Shown here piece after piece: positions 10,774-49,371 of a stretch of DNA of 64,000 bases (positions are counted from its first letter, which is position 1; the number at the start of each line of letters is the position of its first letter). Both the position numbers and the translations under genes were made by a program. The notes under the pieces were generated by a model, which saw only the letters and a list, made by a program, of their open reading frames with translations, was not told where the DNA came from and did no database searches. Location: positions 153,183 to 217,182 of IMG/VR virus record IMGVR_UViG_3300046808_001241. One strand, given 5' to 3'.

Positions 10774-10971
10774 ATGTTCAAAAATATTTACTACAAAACC
10801 TTAGTTTGGACTTCTTATCAAATTGGAGATATTTTGAGTAATTTTGAATATGAATGGAGTTATAACCTCTATCAAAAATGCATGAGCTTTTCTTTAGATT
10901 GCGATGAGCATATTGATTTTTGGTTTTGGAAAGAACCTCCTTTGAACGACGATGAGGATGACAATTTATGA
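10774..10971 (+). CDS. Small hypothetical protein
   Basis: 65 aa, acidic tail, ATGA overlap with nrdB. Confidence 0.5.
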   Translation: MFKNIYYKTLVWTSYQIGDILSNFEYEWSYNLYQKCMSFSLDCDEHIDFWFWKEPPLNDDEDDNL

Positions 10972-14754: not shown

Positions 14755-16404
14755 ATGACTGAAAAATACTATTGGCTTAACAATGACTCGCGAAAATTTC
14801 TTGAGCGTGGATATCTTCTTGAAGAAGAAACTCCGGAACAACGAATTCGAGACATTGCAGAAGCTGCTGAAAAATATCTTGGTATAAAAGGGTTTGCTGA
14901 TAAATTCGAAGAATACGTTGCAAAAGGTTTCTACAGCTTAAGCTCGCCTGTATGGTCCAACTTTGGAAGAAAACGTGGTCTTCCTATAAGTTGTTTTGGA
15001 TCTTACATATCCGATACAATGGAATCGATTTTGCATAAAGTTTCAGAAGTAGGTATTATGACAAAACACGGAGGAGGAACTTCTGCATACTTTGGAGCAA
15101 TTCGAGGAAGAGGAACTACAATCTCTTGTGGAGGAGAATCTACAGGATCTGTACATTTTATGGAGCTTTACAACAAGCTAATGAATGTCGTTTCGCAAGG
15201 TAATGTTCGTAGAGGCTCATTTGCTGCATATCTTCCCATCGATCACAAAGATATTGAAGAGTTTCTTGAGATTCGTTCAGAAGGACATGACATCCAAGAA
15301 ATGTCGTTTGGTGTATGTGTTTCTGATCAATGGATGAAAGACATGGTTGATGGAGACAAAGACAAACGCAAGATTTGGTCCAAAGTCATTAAAAAGCGGT
15401 TCGAATCTGGTTATCCTTATATCTTTTTTTCTGATACAGCCAATAATAACGCTCCACAAGTTTATAAAGACAAAGGACTAAAGATTCACAATTCCAATCT
15501 TTGCACGGAGATTTTTTTATCCAACTCAGAAGAGGAATCTTTTGTTTGTGATCTATCGTCACTTAATCTCGAAAAGTGGGATGAAATCAAAAATACAGAT
15601 GCTGTTCAAACATTAGTGTACTTCCTCGACGCTGTGATGTCAGAGTTTATTGACAAAACAGAAGGCATGCAATTCATGGAAGCTCCAAGAAAGTTTGCGA
15701 TTAACCAAAGAGCTCTTGGTGTAGGTGTTCTTGGATGGCATTCGCTGCTCCAAACTAAGATGATTGCTTTTGAGTCATTTGATGCGAAGATACTTAATGT
15801 GGATGTTTGGAAGACAATACGGGAACGAGCTGACAAAGCCACAGAAGAACTTGCTGGTCTTTTTGGAGAACCAGAATTGCTTAAGGGCTATGGAAGAAGG
15901 AATACAACAACTCTTGCCATTGCACCCACAACCAGCTCAGCGTTTATCTTGGGCCAAGTATCCCAGTCAATTGAGCCCTATAATTCAAACTATTATGTTC
16001 GCGACTTGGCTAAAGGTAAGTTTTCATACAAAAATCCATACCTTAAATCACTGCTAAAACAAAAGGACAAAGATAATGATGAAACATGGTCTTCGATTCT
16101 TGCTCATGGTGGTTCTGTTCAGCATCTTGATTTCTTATCAGATAATGAAAAAGACGTATTCAAAACTTTTGGAGAGCTTTCCCAAAAAGAAATCGTCATC
16201 CAAGCGGCGCAAAGGCAAAAATACATTGATCAAGGTCAATCCTTAAACGTAATGATTCCTCATGATGCTAAACCAAAAGACGTTAATGAGCTTTTGATAT
16301 TTGGTTGGGAACAGGGAATCAAGAGTTTCTACTACCAAAAATCTACCTCGCCCTCACAAAAGCTAGCTAGATCGATTCTTACCTGCAAATCTTGTGAAGG
16401 GTAA
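14755..16404 (+). CDS. nrdA: Ribonucleotide reductase class Ia alpha subunit (no ATP cone)
   Basis: PISCF, SNLCTEI, CDLSSLNL, AIAPT, KSFYYQ, C-terminal CKSCEG. Confidence 0.95.
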   Translation: MTEKYYWLNNDSRKFLERGYLLEEETPEQRIRDIAEAAEKYLGIKGFADKFEEYVAKGFYSLSSPVWSNFGRKRGLPISCFGSYISDTMESILHKVSEVGIMTKHGGGTSAYFGAIRGRGTTISCGGESTGSVHFMELYNKLMNVVSQGNVRRGSFAAYLPIDHKDIEEFLEIRSEGHDIQEMSFGVCVSDQWMKDMVDGDKDKRKIWSKVIKKRFESGYPYIFFSDTANNNAPQVYKDKGLKIHNSNLCTEIFLSNSEEESFVCDLSSLNLEKWDEIKNTDAVQTLVYFLDAVMSEFIDKTEGMQFMEAPRKFAINQRALGVGVLGWHSLLQTKMIAFESFDAKILNVDVWKTIRERADKATEELAGLFGEPELLKGYGRRNTTTLAIAPTTSSAFILGQVSQSIEPYNSNYYVRDLAKGKFSYKNPYLKSLLKQKDKDNDETWSSILAHGGSVQHLDFLSDNEKDVFKTFGELSQKEIVIQAAQRQKYIDQGQSLNVMIPHDAKPKDVNELLIFGWEQGIKSFYYQKSTSPSQKLARSILTCKSCEG

Positions 16405-19098: not shown

Positions 19099-20913
19099 TT
19101 AACGACTAACTTCTTCCCAATCCATAGAAGCAAGCATTCCCGAACCATTAACAGTATCCGTAGAAGCAACTAAAGTAATTTCATATGGAGTCTTTGTTAA
19201 ATTGTTTCGTTCTAATTGGAATTTGAATAAAGCCTCTTTAAGAATATCTAAGTTTGGAGAGCCTTGGTTAGAAGCATTCAAGAAGCCACTTGCAAGGATT
19301 CTTCCTCCTGCATAGCTTGTTCCGGTTATATTATACTCAACAGCGCTGTCATCCCCAGCATCAACCCAACTTCCTCCGCTTGTAGCACCGCTAGCTTTTA
19401 TTTGCCAATTATAGTTAATGCCATTTCCTGTTCCAAGAATTGACAGAGCGGTAAGAATAACAATGGCATCTAACCTATCAGGAGTTGTTTTTAACTTAAT
19501 TGAAATAATTGGATAATACGTATTTGTTGCTGCAAATGTTCTTGGTGTAGTAATTGGAATGCTGACTGCTTGTTGCAGACCTCTTAGTTCGTAACCGCCT
19601 TCAGAAATTACTGTGGAGCAGACTTGTTTTAGAGTGCGAGAACCAGACGTTGCACCTTTATTAGTAATTTCATATCTTAAAGGTAAGGAAGCAGTTGTAA
19701 TGTATGTAGAAGCAATTAAATTTGCGTGATGGAATGAATGACAGACAACGAATTGACCATTAATAACAAGGCCACATCTTACCGTTCCGACCCCAAGCCA
19801 TTCAATATCCATCCAAAAGATTTGAGCTTTTGTAATGTCAAGCGTGAGACCAGAAGGGCCGTTTCCGTCAAGTTTGTCCCCATTCCATGCAGAAAGAGGA
19901 ACAATTGTTTCAGAGGAAGGAGAGCCATTAACAAGACTTCTTTCAACAAAGCTAATTGTTCCATCATCCAGCTGAATATAAATTCCATTATCTTGGCCAA
20001 AGTAACCAACTCTTTGTCGAAGATTGGTTGCAGAAGGAGCCATGATAAACGTGTTCATGACTTGTAAAGATTTCCCAGCTTGATAGCTAAAGACTTTTGT
20101 TGTTTCCCGGATGACAGAAGAACCAGACAAGTTACTGACTGTCATGTCAATCAATCCTTGATTTTGGTTGAATGAGGTAGAACCCCCGACTGCAGTTAAA
20201 GAAGACCAAAGATTGTTGTCTCGATACCTGTGAGAAGAATCAAACAAGGTTAGAGGACTGGATGTTCTTAGACGACCAAATGCATCAAAGGTTGGAGAGT
20301 GCGCAAAAGTAACAGGAAACCCAACAGAAGGATCAACGGTTGCAGTAATTGGATTTGTTACATTAACATTTAAAGATGACGTTGCAGAAACAACAGTTAC
20401 ATTATTATTGTTGAGATCTTTTAAAGCAATTGAGTTAAGAACATTAACTCCAGTCGTTGGATTAGTAACGGTAATAGAACCAGAGACTCCAACAGTATTA
20501 GAAATATTAACAGCAGTTACTGGAGCAACTTCAAAGACTCTTAGAGCACTCAGAGTTTTATTGACTGCTGCAAAGTTCCCAGCTTTGTCCCCAATTGTTA
20601 TGTCATCAACAGAAGATTCTAAGTCCTGAGTAAGAACCTTGAGAGCATTTCCTTCTGAACCTCCTAATTGAACGATGGTAGCTCGAATTGTATGATTGAC
20701 TCCATCTGTTAGTTCTACTGCTCCAATGTTAATATCCGAAGCACTTAAAGAGATTGAAAGATCGCTTAAGTTTGTAATATAACCAGCACGAGCAAATAAA
20801 GGTCTATTGGCATCGTTTTCAACAGGAACCCAAGAAAATGTTTCGGCCATTCCAACATTATATGAAGGAGGTTGACCAGGAGTGCCAGTAAGTTTTGGAG
20901 TAAGAGTAGCCAT
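19099..20913 (-). CDS. Large putative virion protein (DAFGRLR family)
   Basis: 604 aa; FDAFGRLRTSSPLTLFDSS motif common in aquatic phage structural regions; GATAAGTA upstream. Confidence 0.7.
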   Translation of the reverse strand: MATLTPKLTGTPGQPPSYNVGMAETFSWVPVENDANRPLFARAGYITNLSDLSISLSASDINIGAVELTDGVNHTIRATIVQLGGSEGNALKVLTQDLESSVDDITIGDKAGNFAAVNKTLSALRVFEVAPVTAVNISNTVGVSGSITVTNPTTGVNVLNSIALKDLNNNNVTVVSATSSLNVNVTNPITATVDPSVGFPVTFAHSPTFDAFGRLRTSSPLTLFDSSHRYRDNNLWSSLTAVGGSTSFNQNQGLIDMTVSNLSGSSVIRETTKVFSYQAGKSLQVMNTFIMAPSATNLRQRVGYFGQDNGIYIQLDDGTISFVERSLVNGSPSSETIVPLSAWNGDKLDGNGPSGLTLDITKAQIFWMDIEWLGVGTVRCGLVINGQFVVCHSFHHANLIASTYITTASLPLRYEITNKGATSGSRTLKQVCSTVISEGGYELRGLQQAVSIPITTPRTFAATNTYYPIISIKLKTTPDRLDAIVILTALSILGTGNGINYNWQIKASGATSGGSWVDAGDDSAVEYNITGTSYAGGRILASGFLNASNQGSPNLDILKEALFKFQLERNNLTKTPYEITLVASTDTVNGSGMLASMDWEEVSR

Positions 20914-21152: not shown

Positions 21153-22529
21153 TTAAAATTTATTATTAAACGGAGAAGTAACAAAATTCATATCAAGAGA
21201 AACCGTGTCATATGTATTTGTTGGATCGTAGATGCGGGCGGTTGTGCTGTCATGTGGAACGCAAAATACTTTTCCGTTTTGCATGAGTACTGCACCAAAT
21301 CCTGACCCTCCTCCAGTAAAAACTGCACTTGAAGTGATTAAAGTATCCGATACAGGATCGTATATCTTGGCATTTGTTGTAGATGCGTAGGATAAAGGTG
21401 GAATGAACACTTTTCCATTAGGAAGAATAACTCCACCAGCAGCAAACAAACCTCCTGGATATGTTCCGCTTGGTACAGTAGTTGTATCCGTTATAGGATC
21501 ATAAATCCTAGCAGTAGTGTTAGAAGCAGGAACGCAAAAAACTTTTCCGTTAGGTAATAGAACTGCTCCTAGAGAAGAACTGCTTGATGCAAATGTTCCG
21601 CTTGGAGTAGTTAAGGTGTCTGTAACAGGATCATAAATTCTTGCAGTAGGACCATCTTCAGGATTGCAAAATACTCTACCGTCTGAAAGAAGTACTGCTC
21701 CCGAAAAAGAATATGCTGGAAACGTTCCACCCGCAATAGTTGATGAATTTGTTGACGGATTATAAATTACAGATGGTCCAGAAGTACCCATGTGTCTTAG
21801 ACAATAAACTCTACCGTCTGGAAGTAATACTCCTCCATAATAATTATCAGGAAAACTTCCACCAGCAATACTTACGGTATCTGTAGTGGGATTGTATATT
21901 CTAGGACTATTACCTTGATTTGGGATACAAAATACTCTTCCATCTGGAAGCAAAACTCCCCCATTCGAAAAATAACCTCCTGGATACGTTCCGTTCGGAA
22001 CGGTTGTAGTATTGGTTATTGGATCATATATTCTAGCTGTAGTGCTAAAGCAAGGAACACAAAACACTCTTCCGTCTCGCATTAGAACTCCTCCAATAAA
22101 AGCGGACCCACCCGGAAAGGTCCCATTTGGAGTAGTCAATCGATCCCCAACAATCACATCGTTATTCCTAATAGTATCTAACAAGGCAGCTCTATAATTG
22201 ACCCATCCAGACCCAATTTGATTATTTGTAGCGCTTGTTTGAGGAGTTGAGTTCCAAGTTGGAAATGGTCTTGCTCCTCCCCATTGCGTCCCATTGAATG
22301 TCATCATCTGACCAGAAGAAGCTCCAGAAACGCTAACAACTGCTGATAAGACTTTTGAAGTGCTTTGATAAGTCAAATCAATATTAGCAGAATCAACAAT
22401 ATTTAAACTTCCTCCAGTAGCAGATAAGCTTAAAAGGTTTGCAGAAAGTGTTTGGAAAGCTCCATTGAGATATTCAAGAGAGTCCCCAATACATTGATCT
22501 TCAGAAATTGGAATGCCAGCGAGTGTCAT
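21153..22529 (-). CDS. Kelch-like beta-propeller virion protein, paralog 1
   Basis: ~7 repeats GGVLLPDGRVFCVP...ARIYDP; N-terminal CIGDSL anchor. Confidence 0.8.
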   Translation of the reverse strand: MTLAGIPISEDQCIGDSLEYLNGAFQTLSANLLSLSATGGSLNIVDSANIDLTYQSTSKVLSAVVSVSGASSGQMMTFNGTQWGGARPFPTWNSTPQTSATNNQIGSGWVNYRAALLDTIRNNDVIVGDRLTTPNGTFPGGSAFIGGVLMRDGRVFCVPCFSTTARIYDPITNTTTVPNGTYPGGYFSNGGVLLPDGRVFCIPNQGNSPRIYNPTTDTVSIAGGSFPDNYYGGVLLPDGRVYCLRHMGTSGPSVIYNPSTNSSTIAGGTFPAYSFSGAVLLSDGRVFCNPEDGPTARIYDPVTDTLTTPSGTFASSSSSLGAVLLPNGKVFCVPASNTTARIYDPITDTTTVPSGTYPGGLFAAGGVILPNGKVFIPPLSYASTTNAKIYDPVSDTLITSSAVFTGGGSGFGAVLMQNGKVFCVPHDSTTARIYDPTNTYDTVSLDMNFVTSPFNNKF

Positions 22530-22537
22530 GTTAGTAT

Positions 22538-23917
22538 TTATGAGCCAAAGTTTACATATGGACTAGTAACAAAATTCATATCAAGAGAAACTGATTGATA
22601 CGTCGAAGTTGGATCGTAAATTCTTGCTGTAGTACCGTTGTGCACAAACACTTTTCCGTTTTGCATTAAAGTTAATCCACCATATGATACAGAGCTCATT
22701 CCTATATCTACTGAGCGACTCGTATCTGTCAATGGATCGTAAATGTGAGCGCCACCACCAAATCCAACTATTAATACTTTTCCGTTTGGAAGAACACAGG
22801 CATCTCCAGAACCAAAATTAGAGCCCCCACTTGGTGTAGATACTGTATTGGTTATTGGATCATATATTCTTGCTGGAGCTGGGCTTGTATCACTCGCTGT
22901 AGTATAACTAGTGCAAAAAACTTTTCCGTTTGGAAGTAAAACCACCTTTGACGTAAATTGAGGCAGCCCTCCAACGGTTGTAGTCGTTAATGTAGTGACA
23001 GGGTCATATATTCTTGCTGTACCGTCACCTGCAAAAATAGGCACAAATATTTTTCCGTCAGGAAGAAGTGTAGCTGATTGAGCATATGCTCCTCCGGAAA
23101 CGTAGGCATAAATTGGCGTAGCAGGCACGAAAACAGTTCCTGTAACAGGATCCCAAATATGTGCATAGCCACTATAACCCGGAATAGTAAATATTTTTCC
23201 ACTAGGTAAAACTATAGCAACTACTCCTTGACTCGTTAACCCAGACCAAGATCCAGAATTTGTAACTGTTTCGGTTACATAATCCCAAATAGCTGCTTGA
23301 GGAGCTGTATGTGGATTTACAAATACTCTTCCGTCTGGAAGCAAACAAGCTCCAATATATTCCGGACCTCCAAACGTTCCACCTGGAACTGTAATGGCAT
23401 TTGTAGAAGGATTATAAATACGAGCTGTAGTTGTATTTACTGGAGGTAAAAATACTCTTCCGTCTTTAAGTAGAATTCCTCTAGACCATAATCCATTTAT
23501 TGTTCCGCTTGGAGTAGTCAATCTATCCCCAACAATGTCCCTATTATTCCTAATAACATCAGTCAGAGCTCTTTGATAATTTAAAAATCCGCTATTGCCA
23601 ATTTGGTTATTAACAGCGCTTGTTTGAGGAGTTGAGTTCCATGTCGGAAATGATCTTGCTCCAACAAATGCTGACAAAGTGCTGCTATAAGTCATTCTTT
23701 GACCGTCTTGAGCAGTCAGTGCTAAAGTTGCTGTCAAGGTCTTTGTTGAAGAATTATAATCCAAATCAATAGTTGAAGAATCTTTGGCAGACAACGCATT
23801 AAAGCTTGCAGAAACGCTATAAACGTTTGTAGAAAGAGTTTGAAAAGCGCTATTAATATATTGAAGAGAATCGCTTATGCACTGATCTTCTGAAATTGGA
23901 ATGCCATTAAGAACCAT
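22538..23917 (-). CDS. Kelch-like beta-propeller virion protein, paralog 2
   Basis: Same architecture; shared PTWNSTP and LDMNFVTSP segments. Confidence 0.8.
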   Translation of the reverse strand: MVLNGIPISEDQCISDSLQYINSAFQTLSTNVYSVSASFNALSAKDSSTIDLDYNSSTKTLTATLALTAQDGQRMTYSSTLSAFVGARSFPTWNSTPQTSAVNNQIGNSGFLNYQRALTDVIRNNRDIVGDRLTTPSGTINGLWSRGILLKDGRVFLPPVNTTTARIYNPSTNAITVPGGTFGGPEYIGACLLPDGRVFVNPHTAPQAAIWDYVTETVTNSGSWSGLTSQGVVAIVLPSGKIFTIPGYSGYAHIWDPVTGTVFVPATPIYAYVSGGAYAQSATLLPDGKIFVPIFAGDGTARIYDPVTTLTTTTVGGLPQFTSKVVLLPNGKVFCTSYTTASDTSPAPARIYDPITNTVSTPSGGSNFGSGDACVLPNGKVLIVGFGGGAHIYDPLTDTSRSVDIGMSSVSYGGLTLMQNGKVFVHNGTTARIYDPTSTYQSVSLDMNFVTSPYVNFGS

Positions 23918-23921
23918 AATG

Positions 23922-25310
23922 TTAGTATTTATTTACGAATGGGCTTGTTACAAAATTCGTATCAAGAGTAATTGGTTGATAAGAATCTGTTGGATCATAG
24001 ATGCGGGCGGTTGTGCTGTCGCAAGGCACTAAAAACACTTTTCCGTTAGGAAGGAGAACACCTCCAAAAAAAGGAAAACCAAGAGGATAATTCCCACTCG
24101 GCGTAGTCAATGTATCGGTAACAGGATCATATATTTTCGCTGTTGTGTTATTATTATTCGGAATACAAAATACTTTTCCGTTTGGAAGAAGAACTCCTCC
24201 AAAAAAAGATCCAGAATACGTTCCAGCAGGTATTGTCAATGTGTCTGTTACTGGATCATAAATACGAGCGGTTGTAGAGGTATTTGGAACACAAAATACT
24301 TTTCCGTTTGGAAGAAGAACGCCTCCTGCAAAAGCTCCTGCTGTAGGATACGTTCCTGTAGGGGTCGTTAATGTGTCTGTTGCTGGATTGTAAATACGAG
24401 CAGTTGCAGAGTTGTGTGGAACAGAAAAAACTCTACCGTCACCAAGAAGAACGCCTCCTATAAAAGCAAAAGTTCCTGTAGGATATGTTACTGTAGGGAT
24501 CGTTAATGTGTCTGTTGCTGGATTGTAAATACGGGCAGTTGTGGATTGATTAGCTGGAAGACAAAATACTCTACCGTCACCAAGAAGAACACCACCCCTA
24601 AAGGCTCCACCTCCAGGATATGATCCTGTTGGAGTTGATACAGTATTTGTTATTGGATCATAAATACGAGCGGTAGTGCTATAATATGGTACACAAAAAA
24701 CTTTTCCGTTTGGAAGAAGAACGCCTCCTGCAAAGGCATAATTTCCAGGATATGATCCTAATGGAGTTGATACAGTATCTGTTATTGGATCATAAATGCG
24801 AGCGGTTGTAGAGTTGCTCGGTACACAAAATACTTTTCCGTCTGGAAGAATAACTCCTCCTTCAAACGCCTCGCTTCCCGTGTAAGTCCCATTTGGAGTA
24901 GTCAACCTATCTCCACTAATGTCCCTATTATTCCTAATAACATCAGTAAGTGCTCTTTGCCAGTTTGCAAAGCCATTAATAGATGTTCCACTTAATTGCA
25001 AATTTTGAGCACTTGTTGCGGGAGTCGAGTTCCATGTTGGAAAAGGTCTTTGATCAACCCACTTTTGCTGGACTGCATCATAAGTCAAAGTTTCACCAGC
25101 AGAAGCAGGTACAGAAATTGTTGCAGAAAGAACTTTCGATGAGCTGTTATAAAATAGAGCAACTTGGTCATTGCTTAGCACATTTAAATTTGCAGCTCCT
25201 AATGAAATTCCTTTAACATTTGCCGAGAGGGACAAAAAAGCATTGTTGATTGTGTCTAATGAATCTCCAATACAATCATTTTCGGAGATAGGAATGCCGG
25301 ACAAAACCAT
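23922..25310 (-). CDS. Kelch-like beta-propeller virion protein, paralog 3
   Basis: Most regular repeats; near-identical ~129-bp DNA units around 24360-24600. Confidence 0.8.
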   Translation of the reverse strand: MVLSGIPISENDCIGDSLDTINNAFLSLSANVKGISLGAANLNVLSNDQVALFYNSSSKVLSATISVPASAGETLTYDAVQQKWVDQRPFPTWNSTPATSAQNLQLSGTSINGFANWQRALTDVIRNNRDISGDRLTTPNGTYTGSEAFEGGVILPDGKVFCVPSNSTTARIYDPITDTVSTPLGSYPGNYAFAGGVLLPNGKVFCVPYYSTTARIYDPITNTVSTPTGSYPGGGAFRGGVLLGDGRVFCLPANQSTTARIYNPATDTLTIPTVTYPTGTFAFIGGVLLGDGRVFSVPHNSATARIYNPATDTLTTPTGTYPTAGAFAGGVLLPNGKVFCVPNTSTTARIYDPVTDTLTIPAGTYSGSFFGGVLLPNGKVFCIPNNNNTTAKIYDPVTDTLTTPSGNYPLGFPFFGGVLLPNGKVFLVPCDSTTARIYDPTDSYQPITLDTNFVTSPFVNKY

Positions 25311-25318
25311 GTGTATAT

Positions 25319-27307
25319 TTATTGGTTAAAATCCGTTTTCCAACCAAGTACATGAATTGGAATTAACATTTCGTCATTTGTTGCAGCTAGTGAACCTTCT
25401 GCTAAACTATTTCCTGGACGCTTAACAAAGAATCTTACTATTTGACCTTCTTTGTTTCCTTTAAAATCTGTAGAAAGAGATGCAAAAGTTGTATAATTTA
25501 TAATTCCATACTGAGCTGGATAAGCCGAAACTCTAACAACTTCGGTATTTGCAAAATCAAAATTATAATCAGTTCCTTGAGAAACTAATTTACCACCAAA
25601 ATCCCATGAAACACTAGAAAGAGGAACTGTAGAAATACCACCTTCAACATCGCTGATCATTGCAAGATTGTATCTAAAATTGTTATTAACTTTTGAGAAA
25701 TTACCTCCAACAAGAACTGAATTTTGATACTTCGTCAATGAACTATTGATTAAAGAAGGACCGTTCTGAATAGTTGGCTTCCAGTAAACATATTCCCCAG
25801 TTGATGTATCAGAAGTAAAGCTAGTCTTTTTAACAGAGCAGAGATAACTTTGGTGCTCGTCATTAATTCTTGTGAATCTTCCGTAGCAATAGATTTCAGA
25901 ATTCGTGTCTTGATCTTGAGTTACGAAAGAAGTTACAGGACCATTAAACTTTGGTTTCCAAACTGGTTGAATTAACAATGAATTAGTTTGAATCTTATAA
26001 GAGACTGCATTGTAGTAAACTGTCTGTGCTCCATTATCCCTTGGATTTGAGTTAAATTCAGAATCTGTAAAGCATCTGGAAAATTCACCACCAACATAAA
26101 GATAGATTGAACCACCATCAGACGTTGTATCATCCACAGTTAGAGTGTAAACTGGACCATTAATAATTGGCTTCCAAGCAGCAAGTCTAACACCATTTTC
26201 GTCAATACAGCAAAGATTTTGACATGTTAGTGTTGTATTGGTGTTAATTTTAAACTGACCTCCGACAAAAATCTTTGTTCCAGAGTATGCAATAGAATTG
26301 ATCGTACAAGGACCAGAGAAAATTGAAGAAATGTCAGATAACGAAGCTATTGGGTTTGATACAACAGTTGTTAAATCAATTCTGAATAACCCATTGGAAG
26401 TTAATCTAAGTCCAGAAACAACAGAAGCACTTTGTGTTCCATAGTTAACATAGTCAAAAGCTCCTCCAACAAACAAGTAATTTCCAATAATTTGTACAGA
26501 GTTTACAGAGCCGTTAACATAAAATGGATAAGAGACTCCTGTGCTCTTATTATAGAGACAAAGACCTCTTCCTTTAAAGCCTCCTTGGAATGAACCGCCA
26601 ACGATTAAGAAAGTAGAATTAGAAGCAATTGTATCAACAGAACCCAGAGGACCTAAGTCACCTCCAGTTGAGAATGGATTAGAAATATACGAACCAGTAG
26701 CTGATAAAAGAGGCTCCACTGCTCCAGCACTCAAGCTGATGACGCCAAATTTTCTTGAAACCGTTCCTCCAATTTCTAAAAATTCCCCACCAACATAAAG
26801 ATCTGTTCCATCAACAAGTAAACTATTAACTGTATTATCAAACCAGATTGGACCTCTGGAAGAAACGGAAGAAGCACTATTCAAAGCATAGACTGTCATT
26901 CCATCAACTCCGGAAGCAGTCCACAGAAGGGTTACTTGAGGAATTCGATCGGTCAAGCAAATTGTAGAAAATGTTGCAAGAGGCTTTGGATCGGATGTTG
27001 AACTAACATATGGGAACGTCGTAACTTTTACAGAAGTTCCGTCAAGAAGAGAAATTGTAGAAGGAGAAGCAATAGAGGTTGATTCAAAATCCGTTTGCCA
27101 AGTAAAAGAATTCTTAGTAGAGATTTGAACTTCGTGTCTTTGTTGTTCCGTAATAGACTCTTCGATCATCGTTCCCAATCCAGCAATAACAGAAGGAACT
27201 TCACACAAGCCTTGATCAAGAGCAGAAAAATTAGTATTAAATGTTACTAAAGAATCTCCAATGCATTGATTGGCTCCAACTTGTTGTGTAAAATTACAAA
27301 CTGACAT
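25319..27307 (-). CDS. Beta-propeller (delta-60/Rax2-like LYVGGEF repeats) virion protein
   Basis: LYVGGEF/VGGSF repeats; N-terminal CIGDSL..FN.NF. Confidence 0.7.
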   Translation of the reverse strand: MSVCNFTQQVGANQCIGDSLVTFNTNFSALDQGLCEVPSVIAGLGTMIEESITEQQRHEVQISTKNSFTWQTDFESTSIASPSTISLLDGTSVKVTTFPYVSSTSDPKPLATFSTICLTDRIPQVTLLWTASGVDGMTVYALNSASSVSSRGPIWFDNTVNSLLVDGTDLYVGGEFLEIGGTVSRKFGVISLSAGAVEPLLSATGSYISNPFSTGGDLGPLGSVDTIASNSTFLIVGGSFQGGFKGRGLCLYNKSTGVSYPFYVNGSVNSVQIIGNYLFVGGAFDYVNYGTQSASVVSGLRLTSNGLFRIDLTTVVSNPIASLSDISSIFSGPCTINSIAYSGTKIFVGGQFKINTNTTLTCQNLCCIDENGVRLAAWKPIINGPVYTLTVDDTTSDGGSIYLYVGGEFSRCFTDSEFNSNPRDNGAQTVYYNAVSYKIQTNSLLIQPVWKPKFNGPVTSFVTQDQDTNSEIYCYGRFTRINDEHQSYLCSVKKTSFTSDTSTGEYVYWKPTIQNGPSLINSSLTKYQNSVLVGGNFSKVNNNFRYNLAMISDVEGGISTVPLSSVSWDFGGKLVSQGTDYNFDFANTEVVRVSAYPAQYGIINYTTFASLSTDFKGNKEGQIVRFFVKRPGNSLAEGSLAATNDEMLIPIHVLGWKTDFNQ

Positions 27308-29158: not shown

Positions 29159-29670
29159 TTATGAAACACATTCTAGGACCCAATTCAAGAAGCACTCTTA
29201 CAAACGTTCAAGAAGGAGACAGCCAACCAAATGCTGTTGATCTTCGTTTGGATAAAGTTTTTAAGATTCTTCCAACTGTATTTGAGATTTCTGACACTCA
29301 TAAGAAGTTGAGAGAAACTCAAGAAGTGCTTCCTGATGAAGAAGGATATTTTAATCTTGAAGTAGGAGATTATGAGATAGTTATGAGTAATATTATTAGC
29401 GTAGGAAGTGGAGAATCTGGTTGGATTATTATAAGAAGTTCGTTAAATAGGTCTAACATCTTCACCACGTCGGGCTTGTTTGATAGCAAATACACTGGTT
29501 GCGCTGCGGCCTGTTTGCATGTTGGTACAGGGCCTGCTCGAATCAAAAAAGGAACTCGCGTTGCTCAATATCTAAGTTTTGATGCTGAAATGCTCCATGG
29601 TTATAATGGAAGTTATGGATTTGGAGCAGATGGAAAACCAAAAGCAGATGAAGCAAAATATCACGCGTAG
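29155..29670 (+). CDS. dCTP deaminase/dUTPase family protein
   Basis: QPNAVDLRL, RSSLNRS, SGLFDSKYTG, RVAQ. Confidence 0.85.
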   Translation: MIMKHILGPNSRSTLTNVQEGDSQPNAVDLRLDKVFKILPTVFEISDTHKKLRETQEVLPDEEGYFNLEVGDYEIVMSNIISVGSGESGWIIIRSSLNRSNIFTTSGLFDSKYTGCAAACLHVGTGPARIKKGTRVAQYLSFDAEMLHGYNGSYGFGADGKPKADEAKYHA

Positions 29671-29676
29671 CGACTA

Positions 29677-30771
29677 TTAATAAAGCCGTTCGCATTGCTT
29701 TAAATGACTAGGCTTTCGTCTACCTCCAAAACACCATGCTAAGTCTAAATCTTTTTCTGCATAAGACCAAAGATACCCATGAGCTGATCTTGTTCCATTG
29801 CTTTTTCTGCAGCACTCTATAATCGCAGACGTATGGTTCTTGCCAACTGCCTTGGCTGCGTCAAGAAAACTACGAAACGTTTGTATGTATTCCCCTGAAA
29901 AGTTATATTGAGTTACCGCTCTAACTGCTCTTCCTGTACTCTTTTTCATTTTGGGTCGAGGGTCAATGGGTAGGCCACATTTAAAGGCTGCGACCCTTTG
30001 AGAGCGATTAGTTGGTATATATGGTCCTGGGGACTTGAAAGTAAATGTCCATCTAAATCCCAAAGATATAGAACCTATTCTAGCGCTTTTGTATATATTT
30101 CCTGAACCTTCTTGTCTATAACCTAGTATGCAATCCTTTGCAGTTTGGGCATTGGGATATCGGTTTATGTAGTTCCCGTGCAAATCCCATTGATATACAG
30201 GTCTTTTCTTCTCAAAACACCACTCCAAATCAAGCTGCTCGTTTTCATAAGACCAAAAATATCCTCCGGTAGATTTTTGACCGTCGCTTCTCATGCAACA
30301 CGCACTTACTGCAGAAGAAGTGTTTTGTCCGCAATGTTGCGCAGCAGCCAAACAACTGGGAAACGAGCGAATATATTCTCCGAACAAGTTATATTGCTTG
30401 ACTGGGGAACATAATTTATGACTCGGTTCTTCTCCCAGCTTTATGTTGGTAAGAATACCGCCCTCATCGAGATTGGATCGTCCCCATTTTTGTATCAATC
30501 TTTTTTCTTCATCTAATGCAGTTTGCTCGTCAAAACTTTCAAATACTATTTCATATTTTGGTCCATAACCTAACTTTTTTAATTTTTCTATTTTATTAAA
30601 TTTGTATGGATTGCTCATTTTATCAGAAGACCAGTTGTGATAATGCGCTTCGACTCGCTTTCCTTTTCCCTTTCCAACATAAAAAGGTTGATCATTTCTT
30701 GGGTCTATGAGAACATAGACGTAGTACATAGAATCTGCAGGTAGTTTTTGATTTTCGTTTGTCATAAGCAT
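29677..30771 (-). CDS. Free-standing GIY-YIG homing endonuclease with NUMOD1 repeats
   Basis: YYVYVLIDPR..PFYVGKG..R; three PV.QY...GEYI..F.S...AA modules; likely start is the second ATG at 30765. Confidence 0.85.
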   Translation of the reverse strand: MLMTNENQKLPADSMYYVYVLIDPRNDQPFYVGKGKGKRVEAHYHNWSSDKMSNPYKFNKIEKLKKLGYGPKYEIVFESFDEQTALDEEKRLIQKWGRSNLDEGGILTNIKLGEEPSHKLCSPVKQYNLFGEYIRSFPSCLAAAQHCGQNTSSAVSACCMRSDGQKSTGGYFWSYENEQLDLEWCFEKKRPVYQWDLHGNYINRYPNAQTAKDCILGYRQEGSGNIYKSARIGSISLGFRWTFTFKSPGPYIPTNRSQRVAAFKCGLPIDPRPKMKKSTGRAVRAVTQYNFSGEYIQTFRSFLDAAKAVGKNHTSAIIECCRKSNGTRSAHGYLWSYAEKDLDLAWCFGGRRKPSHLKQCERLY

Positions 30772-30781
30772 AATTACTTAT

Positions 30782-30853
30782 GCTCAAGCGCTTTATTTTT
30801 TGGTTCGTTTGACATAAGCACTCTTCCTACCATTAAAGCGCTTGAGCTTTTTT
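30782..30853 (+). ncRNA. Candidate hairpin small RNA A (antisense to GIY-YIG 5' end)
   Basis: TAATTA 30771-30776, N5, GCTCAAGCGCTTTA/TAAAGCGCTTGAGC 14-bp stem, 38-nt loop, T6; loop 30804-30820 matches 30754-30770 at 16/17. Confidence 0.7.
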
Positions 30854-30875
30854 AATTTCATAGTAAAGTGTCTTC

Positions 30876-31061
30876 ATGCATAAATTTAAAGTAGGGGACA
30901 GAATCTGTAAGCCAAAAGGCTATACATTTGATGGAGAAGTTCGTTCCGTCTTTGAGACAATTAATGGAGACGTGAGAGTTGTTGCTGAGTTGACTACTTC
31001 TAATGGTCTTGGAATGCTTCATATTTTTAGCGAATCTCAGTTAGAATTGAGAGCAGAATGA
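30876..31061 (+). CDS. Small SH3-like phage protein
   Basis: FKVGDRICKPKGYTFDGEVRSVF...VAE..GMLHIF. Confidence 0.7.
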   Translation: MHKFKVGDRICKPKGYTFDGEVRSVFETINGDVRVVAELTTSNGLGMLHIFSESQLELRAE

Positions 31062-31795
31062 ATCACCAGTCGTTTATAGATTACTTCAATAGAGAAGAAC
31101 AACTCATCCTTCAAGAAGGTCTAATAACGACATATCCAGCATCTGCTTTTGAGCATGCTTTAAAAACAAACTTTAAAGAGCATATTAAAGAATTGTTTGT
31201 AGATAAAAACTTTCTTGGTTTCAAAACAAAGTTTGAGCTACATTTAAAAGATGTTTCTAAATTAAAAGAAATTGAAAAATTTGCAAATACTTACGGTTAT
31301 CATTTTGGAGCTTTTAAAGACAATCCTCCAATGGTACAAATCGAACCAAAATATCCTTACAAAGTATTCAAAGATGATCTACCAGAAAAAGCATATCATA
31401 TTACAAGAAACGAACATCTTCAAACAATTCTTAATAAAGGATTGACTCCAAAAGAATCAAAAACGTTTTTTAAACATCCAGGAAATAGAATTTATTTGTT
31501 TGTTACGAAGAATTTGCAAGACGTTTTAAAGCTAAAAGAGCTTCTCAAAAAAACTTTTTCTGCTAGAGAACAAAACGTTGGGTTATCGGTTCTAGAAATA
31601 GATTCGTGGTCAGAAGTTTATTACCTAGATCCTAACCTTGAACCAAAAGATATTTCCAATCATAGCTTAAGAATCTTTACTTTGAGAAACATACCTCCTC
31701 AAATGATAAAATTTTTGCCAGAACTTTCAGATAATAATGGAAAAATCACAAAATCAGTAGAAGATTTCAAGTATCGACAAAATTTAAAGAAATGA
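31058..31795 (+). CDS. ADP-ribosyltransferase-fold protein, paralog 2
   Basis: AYHITRNEHLQTILNKGLTP, HPGNRIYL, YYLDPN. Confidence 0.6.
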   Translation: MNHQSFIDYFNREEQLILQEGLITTYPASAFEHALKTNFKEHIKELFVDKNFLGFKTKFELHLKDVSKLKEIEKFANTYGYHFGAFKDNPPMVQIEPKYPYKVFKDDLPEKAYHITRNEHLQTILNKGLTPKESKTFFKHPGNRIYLFVTKNLQDVLKLKELLKKTFSAREQNVGLSVLEIDSWSEVYYLDPNLEPKDISNHSLRIFTLRNIPPQMIKFLPELSDNNGKITKSVEDFKYRQNLKK

Positions 31796-32574
31796 GTGAC
31801 GATAAAATAGAAAAAATTACTCATATGACTTTTTATGAGTTTTATAAGCAAGAAGAGCGATTAGTGCTTGCTGAAGGTCTTATAAAGTCCTACCCAATTT
31901 TAAATTTTAAATTGGCTGTTTTACATACTTTTAGAGAGCATCTTTTACATATTGGAATCGGCCAATCTTTTGGAATGGATATAAATCTTGTTATCGTTTT
32001 AGATGAAAGAGACGAAGTTGCTCTTAAAGAGATTGAAGAATTTGCTGACACGTATGGTTATCATCTAGGATTTACAAAAAAACTTTTATATAAAGGTAAA
32101 GCTTGTAAAAGCCACCAGTTTGATCCAAAATATCCAATTGTCATCTCCAAAGAATATATTCCAAAAGTAGGCTTTCATATTGCCAGAAACGAACATTTGA
32201 AAAGCATTTTTGAAATTGGGCTAACTCCTAAAACGAGTAAGAGTGATTTTAAACACCCGGGCAACAGAGTATACCTTCTGGTTGCAAACTCTGTTAATTC
32301 AATTCTAAAGACTAAAGAAGTTTTAAGAGGACATGCTAAACGAAAAAAGCCGAACGAGATTGTTGAGTTGTCTGTGCTAAAAGTCAATATTAATGAAGAC
32401 TTGGTTTATTATTTTGACCCCAATCTTGAGCCAGGAGCTATTGATCCGGAATGCTTTGGAATGTTTGTTCTCAGAAACATTCATCCAGCATATGTTGAAC
32501 TTCTTCCGGAATTGTCGGATAATAAAGGAGTTTCGTCGAAATATAAAGAGTACCACAAAAATTTAAAGAAATGA
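31792..32574 (+). CDS. ADP-ribosyltransferase-fold protein, paralog 3 (tandem duplicate)
   Basis: GFHIARNEHLKSIFEIGLTP, HPGNRVYL; same 3' end aaaatttaaagaaatga as paralog 2. Confidence 0.6.
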   Translation: MSDDKIEKITHMTFYEFYKQEERLVLAEGLIKSYPILNFKLAVLHTFREHLLHIGIGQSFGMDINLVIVLDERDEVALKEIEEFADTYGYHLGFTKKLLYKGKACKSHQFDPKYPIVISKEYIPKVGFHIARNEHLKSIFEIGLTPKTSKSDFKHPGNRVYLLVANSVNSILKTKEVLRGHAKRKKPNEIVELSVLKVNINEDLVYYFDPNLEPGAIDPECFGMFVLRNIHPAYVELLPELSDNKGVSSKYKEYHKNLKK

Positions 32575-35957: not shown

Positions 35958-37205
35958 TTACTTGGTAATTTGTCTTTGAGCAGCGGCTGCAGCCGCATCA
36001 GCTCTGCCTCCTCTTGTTATGCTTCCGGCTGCTCTTAGATTGCCTCCGAGCGCAGCAGTAGCTGCGTCTGCTCGACTAGGTTCGTTCGTTTGTTGTTGTG
36101 CAGCTCTTGCGGCAGTTTCTTCTGCAATCGACCGTGTGCGTTCAGCGCGATCAGATGAAATTGTACTAGTACTGACGAACTTTTTAGCAGCCCCATTAAC
36201 AACTGCTTCAAATTGATTTTTGCTCGGCATTGTCATTTCTGATAATGTTAAAGTAACTTGATATGCATCTGGAATGATATATGATTCTCCGTCCATCATT
36301 CTTACGTTTCCTAAATTTTCTACATTAATATTTGTCATTGCTGCTGCATAGCAATAATATTGACCAGGTATAAAAACATCATAAAACACAGGAGGAACGC
36401 CAGTAATATAGTCTCGTTTGTTAAAAAGATTTTGACTCATTAACAAGTAAATTAAGTCTCGGTTTTTTGCCCAAGCCCAATCATTAAGAGTATTATACAA
36501 AGGAAAAGAAATTGTAATTTGTCTTCCGGAATGACCGGCAAAGATTCTTGGCCTATCAAAAACACCTACAGAAGGATATTGCCAAGCGAGAGATGTTTGA
36601 GCAGCTGCTGCAGCAAATTCCCCAGTTTTAGTCATATTTTCTACAGTTCCTGCTAATGCCTTACCCGTAGATCCAAACATACCCAATAATCCAGATACTC
36701 CTCCACCAAGTTGCTTTAAACTTTCCCCAATTGGATCTAGCTGTTGCCATTCTGGTGTTCCAAGCTCAAATCCAGTTTTATTAAAATATGGAAACCAATA
36801 AGAAAAATCCGTTGGTTCATCTTTGGCAAAAATTTCTTGATATACATCTAAAACTTCGCGAGTCTCCCCTCCTTTACCTATAGCATTGAAAAACGTTTGA
36901 GGAGTAAGCTTTGAGTACAAATCTAATTGCTTTTTGATAGATGTTTCATTGCACTTATATTCAATTAATCTTACATATGGAATATCGTCTCTATTTTTGC
37001 GAGGAGAAGGTGTCCAATCATAGTCCTTAACAACATTTATAGTTCCGCTAGACCAACCGTCTTCCAATTTAGGAGCGAGGCTATTTGCTAAGCTTCCTTC
37101 TCCTTTGTCTTTTGAGAAGGTGTCTTTAGCAAAGGATGCAACTCCTCCAAGCGCTTGATTCAACGCAGTGAACGTTCTTTGAAGAGGAATTGCTTGACTG
37201 CTCAT
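35958..37205 (-). CDS. Tail tube initiator/baseplate protein (gp48/gp54-like)
   Basis: PRIF..HSGRQITISFPLYNT...PPVFYDV tube-fold motifs; module context. Confidence 0.55.
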   Translation of the reverse strand: MSSQAIPLQRTFTALNQALGGVASFAKDTFSKDKGEGSLANSLAPKLEDGWSSGTINVVKDYDWTPSPRKNRDDIPYVRLIEYKCNETSIKKQLDLYSKLTPQTFFNAIGKGGETREVLDVYQEIFAKDEPTDFSYWFPYFNKTGFELGTPEWQQLDPIGESLKQLGGGVSGLLGMFGSTGKALAGTVENMTKTGEFAAAAAQTSLAWQYPSVGVFDRPRIFAGHSGRQITISFPLYNTLNDWAWAKNRDLIYLLMSQNLFNKRDYITGVPPVFYDVFIPGQYYCYAAAMTNINVENLGNVRMMDGESYIIPDAYQVTLTLSEMTMPSKNQFEAVVNGAAKKFVSTSTISSDRAERTRSIAEETAARAAQQQTNEPSRADAATAALGGNLRAAGSITRGGRADAAAAAAQRQITK

Positions 37206-42475: not shown

Positions 42476-44965
42476 TTATTTAATGGTTTTGGACGAATTT
42501 TTGACAGAAGAAAATGATATTGCATCATTCTTGATAGTCACTTTAATCTTCGAGCCGTTTGTGAACTTGCCTTCCAACAAGCAGTCAGCTAGAGGATCTT
42601 CAATATATTTTTCAATTGACCTACGAAGCTGTCTTGCTCCGTACTTTGAACTGTAACCTTTTTCGAAAAGAAAGTCATAAACCTTAGTATCAAAGACCAA
42701 TTCCATATTCTTTTCCTTTAGACGATCTGATACTTTGTCGACTTCAAGCTTTACAATCTTGGAAATATCTTCCTTTGTTAAAGAGCGGAAGACAATAATA
42801 CTACTCAAACGATTTATAAACTCTGGTTTAAAGTGCCTCTTTGCTTCTTCTGACATCTTCTGAGCTGTGTCTTCGTGAGTATCATTTTCTGCAACTGGAG
42901 CTCCGAATCCAAGAGTAGTTTGTTTTTTAATCAACTCTGCTCCAAGGTTGGAGGTCATAATGATAATAGTATTTCGGAAATCAATCTTCCGTCCAAGCGA
43001 ATCCGTAACATTACCTTGCTCCAGAATTTGAAGAAGAATATTCACAACGTCCGGATGAGCCTTTTCAATTTCATCAAAGAGTACTACCGAATACGGACGG
43101 CGTCTTACTTGTTCAGTTAGTTGTCCTCCTTCTTCATAACCAATATAGCCTGGAGCTGCTCCAATAAGTCTGGTCAAAGAAATCTTGTCCATGTATTCAG
43201 ACATATCGAATTGGATCAAGCAGTCTTTAGATCCAAACATATATTCAGCAATCGTGCGAGTAAGAAATGTCTTTCCAACGCCTGTCGGACCCAGAAACAA
43301 AAACGAACCGATTGGTCGATTTGGATCTTTCAAATTGACTCTTGCTCGTTTGATTGCCTTCACTACAGCATCCACAGCTTCGTCTTGACCAATCACATGC
43401 TTCTGCAAAGTCTTGTGCATGTCGATCAGTTTTGCAGATTCTTTCTGATCAATCTTTGTTACAGGAATGCCAGTCCACTTAGACAAGACGTGCGCAATGT
43501 CTTCCCGTGTTACATCTACAACAATTTCGTGTTGGTTCTTTTTCCATTGATCAATCGTTTCTGTTAGTTTTGATTTGAGTTTGTTTTCTTCATCCCTCAG
43601 CAAAGCAGCTTTTTCAAACTCTTGATTTTTAATTGCTTGCTGCTTTTCTTCATCAATCCGTTTGACAGACTCTTCGAGTTCTTTAGTAATTGGTTGCTTA
43701 ACCGTAGCTGCAATTCTAGCCTTTGCTCCAGCTTCATCCATCAGGTCAATTGCCTTGTCAGGAAGAAAGCGATTTGTAATGTACCTGTCGGATAGAATGG
43801 CGGATTCTTCCAAAGCTTCGTCAGAAAACTTAGCTTTATGATGCTCTTCGTACTTTGGTCTAATTCCCTTCAAGATTTGAATAGTGTCTTTTACAGAAGG
43901 AGGTTCGACAGAAACTTGCTGGAACCTTCTTTCCAGAGCACTATCCTTTTCAATATACTTCCTGTACTCAGTTACTGTAGTTGCTCCAATACATTGCAAC
44001 AACCCCCTACTCAATGCAGGCTTGATCATATTAGAAGCATCCATCGTTCCTTCTGCAGAACCAGCTCCAACAATTGTATGCAGCTCGTCAATGAATAGAA
44101 TTATGTTCTTATCCTCTTCAATTTCTTTCATGACACCTTTGAGACGCTCTTCAAACTGTCCTCTGTACTTTGTCCCAGCAACCATCAAAGCCATGTCGAG
44201 AGCAATGATCTTTTTGTTTTTGAGAATTTCAGGAACCCTTTCTTCTGCAATTTCGATAGCAAGACCTTCTGCAATTGCTGTTTTACCCACTCCCGCTTCC
44301 CCAACGAGGACAGGATTGTTCTTGGACCTCCTGCAAAGGATTTGAATGACCCGCTCGATTTCATCTGCTCGACCGACTACTGGATCAAGCTTGTGTTCTT
44401 TTGCTTCGTCTGTTAGATTCCTTCCGTATGCTTTAAGGTTTGGAGTCTTCTTATTTGACTTCTTGGTTGTGTTTTGTTTTGGAGGACCGGCAGCCACTGG
44501 TTCTTTTTTGTTATAGTTAGGATCCAACTCAGCAAGAATTTCCTCGCGAGCTAGTTCCAAATCAATATCAAGCTGGTTTAGAACATATACAGCAAGACCA
44601 TCGCCTTCTGCAAGAAGTCCCAACAACAAGTGTTCCGTGCCAATATAAGAATGGCCCATGTCCTTTGCTTCTTTTTCCGCAAGACGGAACACTCTTTCTA
44701 GTCGAGGAGTAGCAGTCGGTATTTCGTTTTTTGGAGACGTTTGAGTATCTGCATCCTCAAGTTCTTTATGAATAGCTTTCTTAATATCTTCAAAGCTTGC
44801 TCCCATCTTCTGCAATACACTTACAGCAATTCCTTGGTTTAATTTAAGTAGTCCAAGGAGCAAATGTTCCGTGCCCACATAATCGTGGTTCATTTGCCTT
44901 GCTTCTTTTTGAGATTGGTTGATTGCTTCAACGGCTCTTGGCGTAAAATTATTAGGAAAATCCAT
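42476..44965 (-). CDS. clpC: ATP-dependent Clp protease ATP-binding subunit ClpC
   Basis: Double Clp-N (GTEHLLLGLL x2), NBD1 GEAGVGKT, UVR middle domain (QEFEKAALLRDEE), NBD2 GPTGVGKT, IGAAPGYIGY. Confidence 0.95.
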   Translation of the reverse strand: MDFPNNFTPRAVEAINQSQKEARQMNHDYVGTEHLLLGLLKLNQGIAVSVLQKMGASFEDIKKAIHKELEDADTQTSPKNEIPTATPRLERVFRLAEKEAKDMGHSYIGTEHLLLGLLAEGDGLAVYVLNQLDIDLELAREEILAELDPNYNKKEPVAAGPPKQNTTKKSNKKTPNLKAYGRNLTDEAKEHKLDPVVGRADEIERVIQILCRRSKNNPVLVGEAGVGKTAIAEGLAIEIAEERVPEILKNKKIIALDMALMVAGTKYRGQFEERLKGVMKEIEEDKNIILFIDELHTIVGAGSAEGTMDASNMIKPALSRGLLQCIGATTVTEYRKYIEKDSALERRFQQVSVEPPSVKDTIQILKGIRPKYEEHHKAKFSDEALEESAILSDRYITNRFLPDKAIDLMDEAGAKARIAATVKQPITKELEESVKRIDEEKQQAIKNQEFEKAALLRDEENKLKSKLTETIDQWKKNQHEIVVDVTREDIAHVLSKWTGIPVTKIDQKESAKLIDMHKTLQKHVIGQDEAVDAVVKAIKRARVNLKDPNRPIGSFLFLGPTGVGKTFLTRTIAEYMFGSKDCLIQFDMSEYMDKISLTRLIGAAPGYIGYEEGGQLTEQVRRRPYSVVLFDEIEKAHPDVVNILLQILEQGNVTDSLGRKIDFRNTIIIMTSNLGAELIKKQTTLGFGAPVAENDTHEDTAQKMSEEAKRHFKPEFINRLSSIIVFRSLTKEDISKIVKLEVDKVSDRLKEKNMELVFDTKVYDFLFEKGYSSKYGARQLRRSIEKYIEDPLADCLLEGKFTNGSKIKVTIKNDAISFSSVKNSSKTIK

Positions 44966-48543: not shown

Positions 48544-49371
48544 TTAGATTGCTGCTTGGATTGCTGTCATGAGGTTTGTTACTCTAGTGTCGAGGAGGGC
48601 GAGGTCGATGGACTCGCCGATGGAGTAAAAGGAGAGGCGGGAATTGCTGTATGTAGTAGCCCCGTTTGTTCGGTAAACAAAAATTTCTGCGGATAAAGGC
48701 TCAACAGAGGTTCTTGTTAGAGTGTGAGAGCCTTGTTTTGCTCTGAAAATATAATTTAAATTATTGTTTCGGCTTAGTCCTAAAAGACCAGTGGCATCCC
48801 CTTTTGATGAAATGGTATCATAGGTGGTGGCGGGGTTTCGGCTTCTCGTAGTCAGGTTTTGAGTTGCGGAGCTTCTGACAAAGTATGTCTGTCCGCTGTT
48901 TGAATTTCCTGCTCCAATATAGGCAGGCCCACCAATTGTTTGCGCGGTCGTTGCATAAACGCTTAAATGCTGGTTATCTTGCGGGTCGGCGTTGTTATTT
49001 CGCCGAGAGTTTAAATACTTAGTTGAGCCGTTTCCGATCAAACCTGTTTCTCGATTATAATCATCAGAAACAAAGTTAAAATTGGTAGGAGCAGCTCCAA
49101 CAAGAGGAACCAAAGCTCCGTTTAATGTCCTTGCTCCAGCAAGAATGCAAGATGCTTTTAAAGAGTTCCAAATACCATCAGACTTACATCCAATGATAAA
49201 AGAATCAATTGCTTGCTTAACAGGATCTTCCAAAGAAGCTCCGTCAGCAGCCTCTACTGCAGAGATATAAGCTGCAGCATTTGCATCAGATACCGAATAA
49301 CCAGCAGGACCGGTTTCAAATATAGTTTTACCTTGTATTTTTGTGTTACCTTGTAGTTTAATTAGTGCCAT
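48544..49371 (-). CDS. Cassette 1 gene A, putative virion accessory protein
   Basis: AYISAVEAADG...KASCILAGARTLNGALVPL; paralog of 54406-55218. Confidence 0.8.
   Translation of the reverse strand: MALIKLQGNTKIQGKTIFETGPAGYSVSDANAAAYISAVEAADGASLEDPVKQAIDSFIIGCKSDGIWNSLKASCILAGARTLNGALVPLVGAAPTNFNFVSDDYNRETGLIGNGSTKYLNSRRNNNADPQDNQHLSVYATTAQTIGGPAYIGAGNSNSGQTYFVRSSATQNLTTRSRNPATTYDTISSKGDATGLLGLSRNNNLNYIFRAKQGSHTLTRTSVEPLSAEIFVYRTNGATTYSNSRLSFYSIGESIDLALLDTRVTNLMTAIQAAI

Follow-up and report, generated by a model that had tools for sequence, protein, structure and literature searches.

A mobile endonuclease gene in an uncultured T4-like phage travels with a small terminator hairpin whose loop stays complementary to the start-codon region of the endonuclease in 14 diverged copies. 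This arrangement points to a built-in antisense RNA brake, although no RNA has yet been observed. The element lies within a 64-kb stretch of DNA (hereafter the window) that is part of a 217-kb uncultured viral contig, IMGVR_UViG_3300046808_001241. The window carries T4-type replication and structural genes, including those for the clamp loader, ribonucleotide reductase, baseplate wedge and hub, and tail fibre. BLAST searches of the region against 50,697 deposited phage genomes, in near and distant modes, gave no match. The features of the element are as follows.

29671-30873, no strand assigned: approximate extent of the mobile cassette, flanked by a duplicated junction (TCACGCGTAG at 29661-29670 and TCATGCATAA at 30874-30883)
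29677-30765, minus strand: GIY-YIG + NUMOD1 homing endonuclease gene (362 aa, start at the second ATG)
30754-30770, minus strand: predicted target, the 5' end of the endonuclease mRNA (UGCUUAUGACAAACGAA; AUG at 30765-30763)
30775-30782, minus strand: promoter-like motif CATAAGTA for the endonuclease mRNA, with a predicted +1 near 30769-30770
30769-30776, plus strand: promoter-like motif CATAATTA for the predicted small RNA, 5 nt before the stem base
30782-30853, plus strand: predicted ~72-nt small RNA with a 14-bp stem, a 38-nt loop and a T6 intrinsic-terminator tail
30801-30832, plus strand: short inner helix (TGGT at 30801-30804 with ACCA at 30829-30832) that closes the apical loop
30804-30820, plus strand: anti-start sequence in the apical loop, the complement of the endonuclease mRNA from -5 to +12
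30821-30828, plus strand: conserved pyrimidine tract in the loop (CTCTTCCT), function unexplained
30864-30869, plus strand: TANNNT (-10-like) box, an inferred promoter, 6 nt before the ATG of the next plus-strand gene (30876) at the cassette edge

The hairpin described in the earlier note is present in the sequence. The 5' arm of the perfect 14-bp stem, GCTCAAGCGCTTTA, occupies 30782-30795 and the 3' arm, TAAAGCGCTTGAGC, occupies 30834-30847; these arms enclose a 38-nt loop (30796-30833) and are followed by T6 at 30848-30853. The sequences TTCGTTTGTCATAAGCA (30754-30770) and TTCGTTTGACATAAGCA (30804-30820) match at 16/17 positions, and the 17-mer occurs only at these two places in the window at up to 3 mismatches. 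The plus-strand RNA is predicted to fold at -25.2 kcal/mol with z = -5.9, and 0 of 200 shuffled sequences fold as well. The minus-strand ORF at 29677-30771 encodes an endonuclease with Pfam matches to LEM-3_GIY-YIG and two NUMOD1 domains. Comparison with relatives reveals that its real start is the second ATG at 30765 (MTNEN...), because the first ATG at 30771 is out of frame in one relative (L003) and absent in another (L232). The positions that the note gave for the overlapping promoter motifs are close to those determined here.

The hairpin belongs to the mobile cassette rather than to the phage backbone. In L001, an endonuclease-free relative, the dCTP-deaminase stop codon overlaps the start of a 61-aa ORF, which is followed by the clamp-loader gene (gp44), and neither the endonuclease nor the hairpin is present. 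In the window, a cassette of about 1.2 kb sits exactly in that junction, flanked by a duplicated and partly decayed copy of it. The GIY-YIG domain, the DNA-binding module and the presence or absence of the gene at an intergenic site (empty in L001; filled in the window, L003 and L223-L232) fit a free-standing, Seg-like homing endonuclease. DNA pattern scans of IMG/VR and of JGI metagenomes, together with a protein search that identified 50 homologues and was followed by examination of contigs, yielded 14 distinct cassettes: the window, L002a and L002b (both carried by L002), L003, L134, L138, L223, L225, L226, L228, L229, L230, L231 and L232. A scan of IMG/VR with the invariant 14-mer alone had returned only chance hits. 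The endonucleases of these cassettes are 36-79% identical to that of the window, and the hairpin is present in every one. The cassettes occupy at least three kinds of insertion context: the junction between dCTP deaminase and the small ORF or gp44 (most copies), the inside of a duplicated 5' end of gp44 (L002a), and the region 3' of gp44 (L002b and L231). Two more distant relatives at the same site, L236 and L238, lack the hairpin and instead have a promoter-like motif, a GC-rich leader hairpin and a classical Shine-Dalgarno sequence. A covariance model built from the 14 copies found no further members in the window or in 30 loci.

Alignment of the 14 copies indicates that the stem is a conserved RNA structure. 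Compensatory double changes occur in 9 of the 14 stem pairs and 96.4% of cells form standard pairs, values that are approached by none of 500 shuffles and by no slid register; RNAalifold recovers the same stem. Strand-specific signs favor the plus strand. Non-Watson-Crick cells are G.U on the plus strand 11 times and A.C 3 times, although this bias falls to 4:1 if the basal column (32/104, stem base or T-run) is discounted. A T-run of at least 5 follows the stem only on the plus strand, in 12 of 14 copies; it is degenerate in L134 and L231. The G+C-containing stem followed directly by T6 conforms to an intrinsic terminator, but a 38-nt loop is unusually large for such an element, and a consensus scan for sigma-70 promoters and terminators, which has a loop limit of 8 nt, listed neither the promoters (the region has no TTGACA-17-TATAAT) nor the hairpin. 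A short inner helix of 4-7 bp closes an apical loop of about 20 nt at the same place in 13 of 14 copies, with different sequences (TTGGY/RCCAA, replaced by GAGTC/GACTC or AGCT/AGCT). Support for this helix is modest, with a mean of -5.3 kcal/mol compared with -2.6 kcal/mol for shuffles. The element matches no family in Rfam 15 at its gathering score; the best hits are 15-25 bits against thresholds of 48-90.

The loop tracks the 5' end of the endonuclease gene. When the real start and the loop copy were aligned on their AUGs, positions -5 to +8 were almost always identical within a cassette (183 of 210 cells over -5 to +9) but differed between cassettes. The pre-AUG block and first codons read UGCUU-AUG-UCAAAC in the majority form, UGCA-AUG-ACAAAC in L003, UGCC-AUG-ACAG in L134, UAUC-AUG-ACAG in L232, UGCUU-AUG-UCUAC in L002b and UGCUU-AUG-UCAGAC in L228. 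Five variable positions (-3, -2, -1, +5 and +6) each take 2-3 states among copies and match in 14 of 14. Identity collapses to 1 of 14 at -6, about where a transcript from the adjacent promoter-like motif should start. Of the 27 differences within the block, 9 are G.U-compatible, 4 are the opposite transition and 14 are other mismatches; the window's own pair has an A.A mismatch at +4. Predicted loop:mRNA duplexes range from -18 to -28 kcal/mol. Cognate pairs average -22.0 kcal/mol compared with -15.6 kcal/mol for non-cognate pairs (permutation p < 5e-5), and the four divergent haplotypes (L003, L134, L232 and L002b) each rank their own target first. The duplex in the window is -24.1 kcal/mol, whereas a shuffled loop gives -6.4 +/- 2.1 kcal/mol. 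The related cassettes show repeats of 11-14 nt exact and 13-19 nt with a mismatch or wobble, spaced 46-51 nt apart. In contrast, among 79 other GIY-YIG loci from IMG/VR, the longest exact repeat between a start region and its upstream 200 nt is 5-9 nt. The 14 copies are related, and we count about five independent matched changes rather than fourteen. Loss of this co-variation was the comparative result that the earlier note had specified as contradicting its antisense interpretation; the opposite was found.

Between the endonuclease start and the stem, all copies keep a nearly invariant 14 nt (GCATAATTACTTAT in the window) that reads [CT]ATAA[ATG]TA on both strands, and the two motifs overlap by 2 nt. 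Variants stay within the motif: CATAAATA on both strands in L229, TATAAGTA/CATAAATA in L228 and CATAAGTA/TATAAGTA in L232. In the window, ATAA[AGT]TA ends 5-10 nt before the ATG of 14 of 47 genes, many of them structural, against 0.24 expected, and these genes lack Shine-Dalgarno sequences. This pattern fits the note's claims of a late-promoter motif and an almost absent leader. The motif resembles what appears to be the T4 late promoter, TATAAATA, from which transcription would start a few nucleotides downstream, implying leaderless or near-leaderless mRNAs. On the small-RNA side the motif is kept as CATAATTA, CATAAATA or TATAAGTA without a conserved ORF; a plus-strand peptide beginning at the ATG at 30780 was rejected because this ATG is absent in L003 and the frame is not kept. 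Conservation on this side is therefore better explained by transcription than by translation. Interestingly, the distance from motif to stem (5 nt) equals the commonest distance from motif to ATG. These assignments remain inferences, inasmuch as no RNA data exist and the host, with its RNA polymerase and sigma factors, is unknown; the motif could be something other than a promoter. A reading of TGCTTA as a T4 MotA box was rejected, because the block becomes TGCA, TGCC or TATC in relatives.

Considered together, these results suggest a model in which the endonuclease cassette carries its own regulator. Two back-to-back phage promoters would fire in opposite directions, one leftwards to give a nearly leaderless endonuclease mRNA with about 5 nt before the AUG, and the other rightwards to give a ~72-nt RNA that is little more than a long terminator hairpin. 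The apical loop of that RNA would display 13-19 nt complementary to the first nucleotides of the mRNA (+1 to about +18), including the AUG and codons 2-4. Pairing would occlude the start codon, and perhaps expose the duplex to RNases, so that endonuclease synthesis stays low or is delayed. The cassette also ends with a TANNNT box (TATTAT, TATGAT, TATCAT, TATACT, TAATAT or TAAAGT) 6-7 nt before the downstream ATG, which suggests that it restores expression of the downstream host gene after its own terminator, a known theme for free-standing endonucleases (PMC2988022). We have high confidence in a functional plus-strand RNA structure that co-evolves with the endonuclease start. Our confidence in the full mechanism, an independent small RNA that represses translation, is only moderate; both promoters, the two transcription start points, accumulation of the RNA and the direction of the effect are inferred. 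The conserved tract at 30821-30828 is also not explained by the model; it is purine-rich in mRNA sense in all 14 copies at -12 to -7 of the loop AUG and is not complementary to the real mRNA.

Other explanations appear less likely. The hairpin could be only a plus-strand terminator or insulator that stops transcription running antisense through the endonuclease before a cassette-borne promoter restarts the downstream gene, with the loop repeat a leftover duplication kept alike by gene conversion. The plus-strand T-run and the TANNNT box are consistent with this view, and the repeat seems to extend as a second, weaker block (CAAAAA) after a 2-nt indel, as expected of an old duplication. However, a neutral remnant should have decayed between endonucleases that are only 36-50% identical; instead, a block with the same sharp borders (-5 to about +8) is kept in all 14 copies while the flanking loop sequence diverges, and conversion tracts of 13-17 nt with a fixed border at the predicted +1 are unlikely. 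An insulator role is compatible with the antisense model rather than exclusive of it. Similarly doubtful is a cis-acting role in a longer minus-strand mRNA, in which the hairpin is a 5' leader whose loop shows a Shine-Dalgarno-like tract, an AUG and a short upstream ORF. Translation of this ORF would melt the stem and deliver ribosomes to the SD-less endonuclease start, or the loop copy would act as a decoy start site for a translational repressor protein. In support of this possibility, a conserved purine tract lies 6-11 nt before the loop AUG in mRNA sense, short upstream ORFs of 4-13 codons end in or just after the stem, and an upstream gene is co-oriented with the endonuclease in L002b and L231. 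Nevertheless, the frame, length and stop of these ORFs are not conserved, nothing in the model requires their first 13 nt to track the endonuclease start, and the G.U pairs of the stem become A.C mismatches on this strand. In the commonest context the neighbors to the right are plus-strand genes, so that no source of minus-strand read-through is evident, and the phage motif directly before the endonuclease predicts a transcript that excludes the hairpin.

It is less probable still that the two direct repeats are DNA operators for a protein such as the endonuclease itself. I-TevI binds an operator overlapping its late promoter (PMC2988022), NUMOD1 domains bind DNA, and one repeat lies next to the promoter. 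Yet the best match of the repeat to the empty homing site in L001 is 11/17, typical of random windows, which also led us to reject homing-site mimicry. Spacing between the repeats varies from 46 to 51 bp, the repeat changes with synonymous and non-synonymous codon changes of the endonuclease N-terminus, which protein recognition would not require, and G.U-compatible differences outnumber the opposite transition. Least likely is a recombination switch in which deletion of the ~50 bp between the 13-17 nt repeats fuses the SD-like tract of the loop to the endonuclease, whose real start lacks such a tract. No deletion variant was seen among the loci recovered, and this model does not explain the stem covariation or the T-run. 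Ribosomal bypass (gene 60-like) across the spacing was rejected, given that the spacing is 46-51 nt and the landing copy has its own AUG.

The closest functional analog is the control of IS10/Tn10 transposase by RNA-OUT, which appears to be a ~70-nt stem-loop RNA made from a promoter facing away from the transposase gene, whose loop pairs with the extreme 5' end of RNA-IN and covers the start codon. RNA-OUT probably overlaps RNA-IN and is encoded by the same DNA, whereas the two transcripts predicted here would not overlap (30782 and about 30770, heading apart); complementarity comes from a separate 13-17 nt copy in the loop, which must co-evolve with the target, and does. The divergent type I toxin-antitoxin loci tisB/istR-1, zorO/orzO, shoB/ohsC and dinQ/agrB encode, as is inferred here, a small RNA next to and divergent from its target that acts through a short stretch of complementarity (PMC4147584). 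Those antitoxins pair within long 5' UTRs and do not cover the start site, and their targets are small membrane-toxic peptides rather than a 362-aa nuclease. The comparison with a type I antitoxin made in the earlier note is thus a functional analogy only. CfrI of cyanophage S-PM2, the one reported antisense RNA linked to a phage homing endonuclease, is a ~225-nt cis-antisense transcript of unknown function that overlaps the endonuclease gene and psbA (PMC2984593; PMC12197685); it is not a hairpin with a separate anti-start loop and is not reported as part of the mobile cassette. The cis hairpins of the T4-type endonuclease genes I-TevI, I-TevII, I-TevIII, segB and mobE sit next to a late promoter and limit translation, as is proposed here, but they contain the RBS in the same RNA (PMC2988022). 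The hairpin described here does not contain the real start, folds best on the opposite strand and carries a terminator tail; the leader hairpins of L236 and L238 appear closer to the T4 arrangement. The c4 antisense RNA of phages P1 and P7 pairs, as is proposed here, through loop-exposed sequences with short sites in a nearby target mRNA, but it is processed from the same transcript as its target and controls immunity (ant), not a mobile nuclease (PMC12197685).

A second hairpin lies at 63240-63305 in the window, with the same 14-bp stem, 38-nt loop and T6 geometry, a perfect TATAAATA 6 nt before its stem, and a loop complementary to the start of a predicted divergent transcript. The covariance model did not detect this hairpin, and a search for relatives of the bS21 gene, made to test it, returned only the window's own contig. 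It is possible, though tentative, that this phage lineage uses a general class of promoter-plus-terminator loop-antisense RNAs to control leaderless mRNAs by pairing with their very 5' ends. The endonuclease-linked RNA would then be a portable, co-evolving version that makes each cassette self-limiting and that could also be orthogonal to other cassettes in the same genome, as L002 carries two cassettes with different anti-start sequences.

Homing endonucleases must be expressed enough to spread, but not so much that they harm their carrier. The controls known in T4-type phages are cis hairpins, promoter choice and autorepression (PMC2988022). A regulator RNA that moves with the endonuclease gene and co-evolves with its start site would add a fourth, self-contained solution, mechanistically closest to RNA-OUT of IS10. 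It would also be a clear case of small-RNA control of a leaderless-type mRNA, where there is no Shine-Dalgarno sequence to mask.

Further analysis of the window revealed a second hairpin with geometry identical to that of the hairpin beside the GIY-YIG endonuclease. This element occupies positions 63226–63311 on the + strand, together with 63134–63176, and is organized as follows:

63226–63233 (+), a perfect TATAAATA, separated by 6 nt from the stem
63240–63253 and 63292–63305 (+), the two arms of a 14-bp stem that encloses a 38-nt loop and is followed by T6 (z = -5.8)
63160–63176, the segment that the loop repeats at 16/17

The two hairpins are the only ones in the window that combine a stem of at least 12 pairs, a 38-nt loop, and a T-run. 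The loop of the second hairpin also shares AACTCGCTT. On the minus strand, the copy at 63160–63176 follows a GATAAATAA motif, so the loop would be complementary to the 5' end of a predicted divergent transcript; no relatives were found in which co-variation between the loop and this copy could be assessed. The second hairpin lies just upstream of a bS21-like gene. The bS21-like assignment was made from the sequence by eye rather than through a family search. The stretch between this ORF and a tRNA gene (62500–63160) contains no convincing ORF. The genes in this region, and other notable ORFs in the window, are:

62337–62410 (+), tRNA-Gly(TCC)
63328–63531 (+), phage-encoded ribosomal protein bS21-like ORF
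12015–13718 (+), 567-aa HNH-type homing endonuclease ORF
31058–31795 and 31792–32574 (+), two paralogous ORFs (42% identity)
42476–44965 (-), 829-aa ORF with a very strong match to a phage ATP-dependent (Lon-like) protease family

The HNH-type ORF, which is preceded by ATTAAGTAA, lies between the genes for the small (10968–11960) and large (14755–16404) subunits of ribonucleotide reductase. The two paralogous ORFs, neither of which matched Pfam or PHROG, are located between the 61-aa ORF and the clamp loader. They are absent at this position from L001 (the endonuclease-free relative) and from L002 and L003 (two relatives that carry the endonuclease cassette).

More distant endonuclease relatives use a different 5' design. 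In two such loci at the same dCTP-deaminase junction (L236, positions 1–141, and L238, positions 1–135), a promoter-like CATAAGTA or AATAAATA is accompanied by a GC-rich hairpin at the start of a leader of about 75 nt and by an AAGGAG Shine-Dalgarno sequence. These loci contain no loop copy of the start. In L002, the cassette is flanked by a duplicated 5' end of the clamp-loader gene (L002:5521–5625 versus L002:6728–6835). The upstream copy is truncated after about 35 codons, as expected if the cassette carried a replacement 5' end into the target gene.

The single genome L002 carries two endonuclease cassettes (5621–6706 and 7641–8532) whose anti-start loops differ (UCAAAC versus UCUAC). Cross-pair duplexes are weaker than cognate ones (-20.0 versus -27.8 and -15.1 versus -20.4 kcal/mol), which could reflect orthogonality.

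Throughout the window, ATAA[AGT]TA ends 5–10 nt before the ATG of 14 of 47 genes, whereas 0.24 are expected; examples are found at 9635–10135, 19099–20913, 21153–27307, 35958–37205, and 48544–49371. These genes have no Shine-Dalgarno sequence, although other genes do have GGAG-type sites. This pattern suggests the presence of T4-late-like promoters that give leaderless or near-leaderless late mRNAs.
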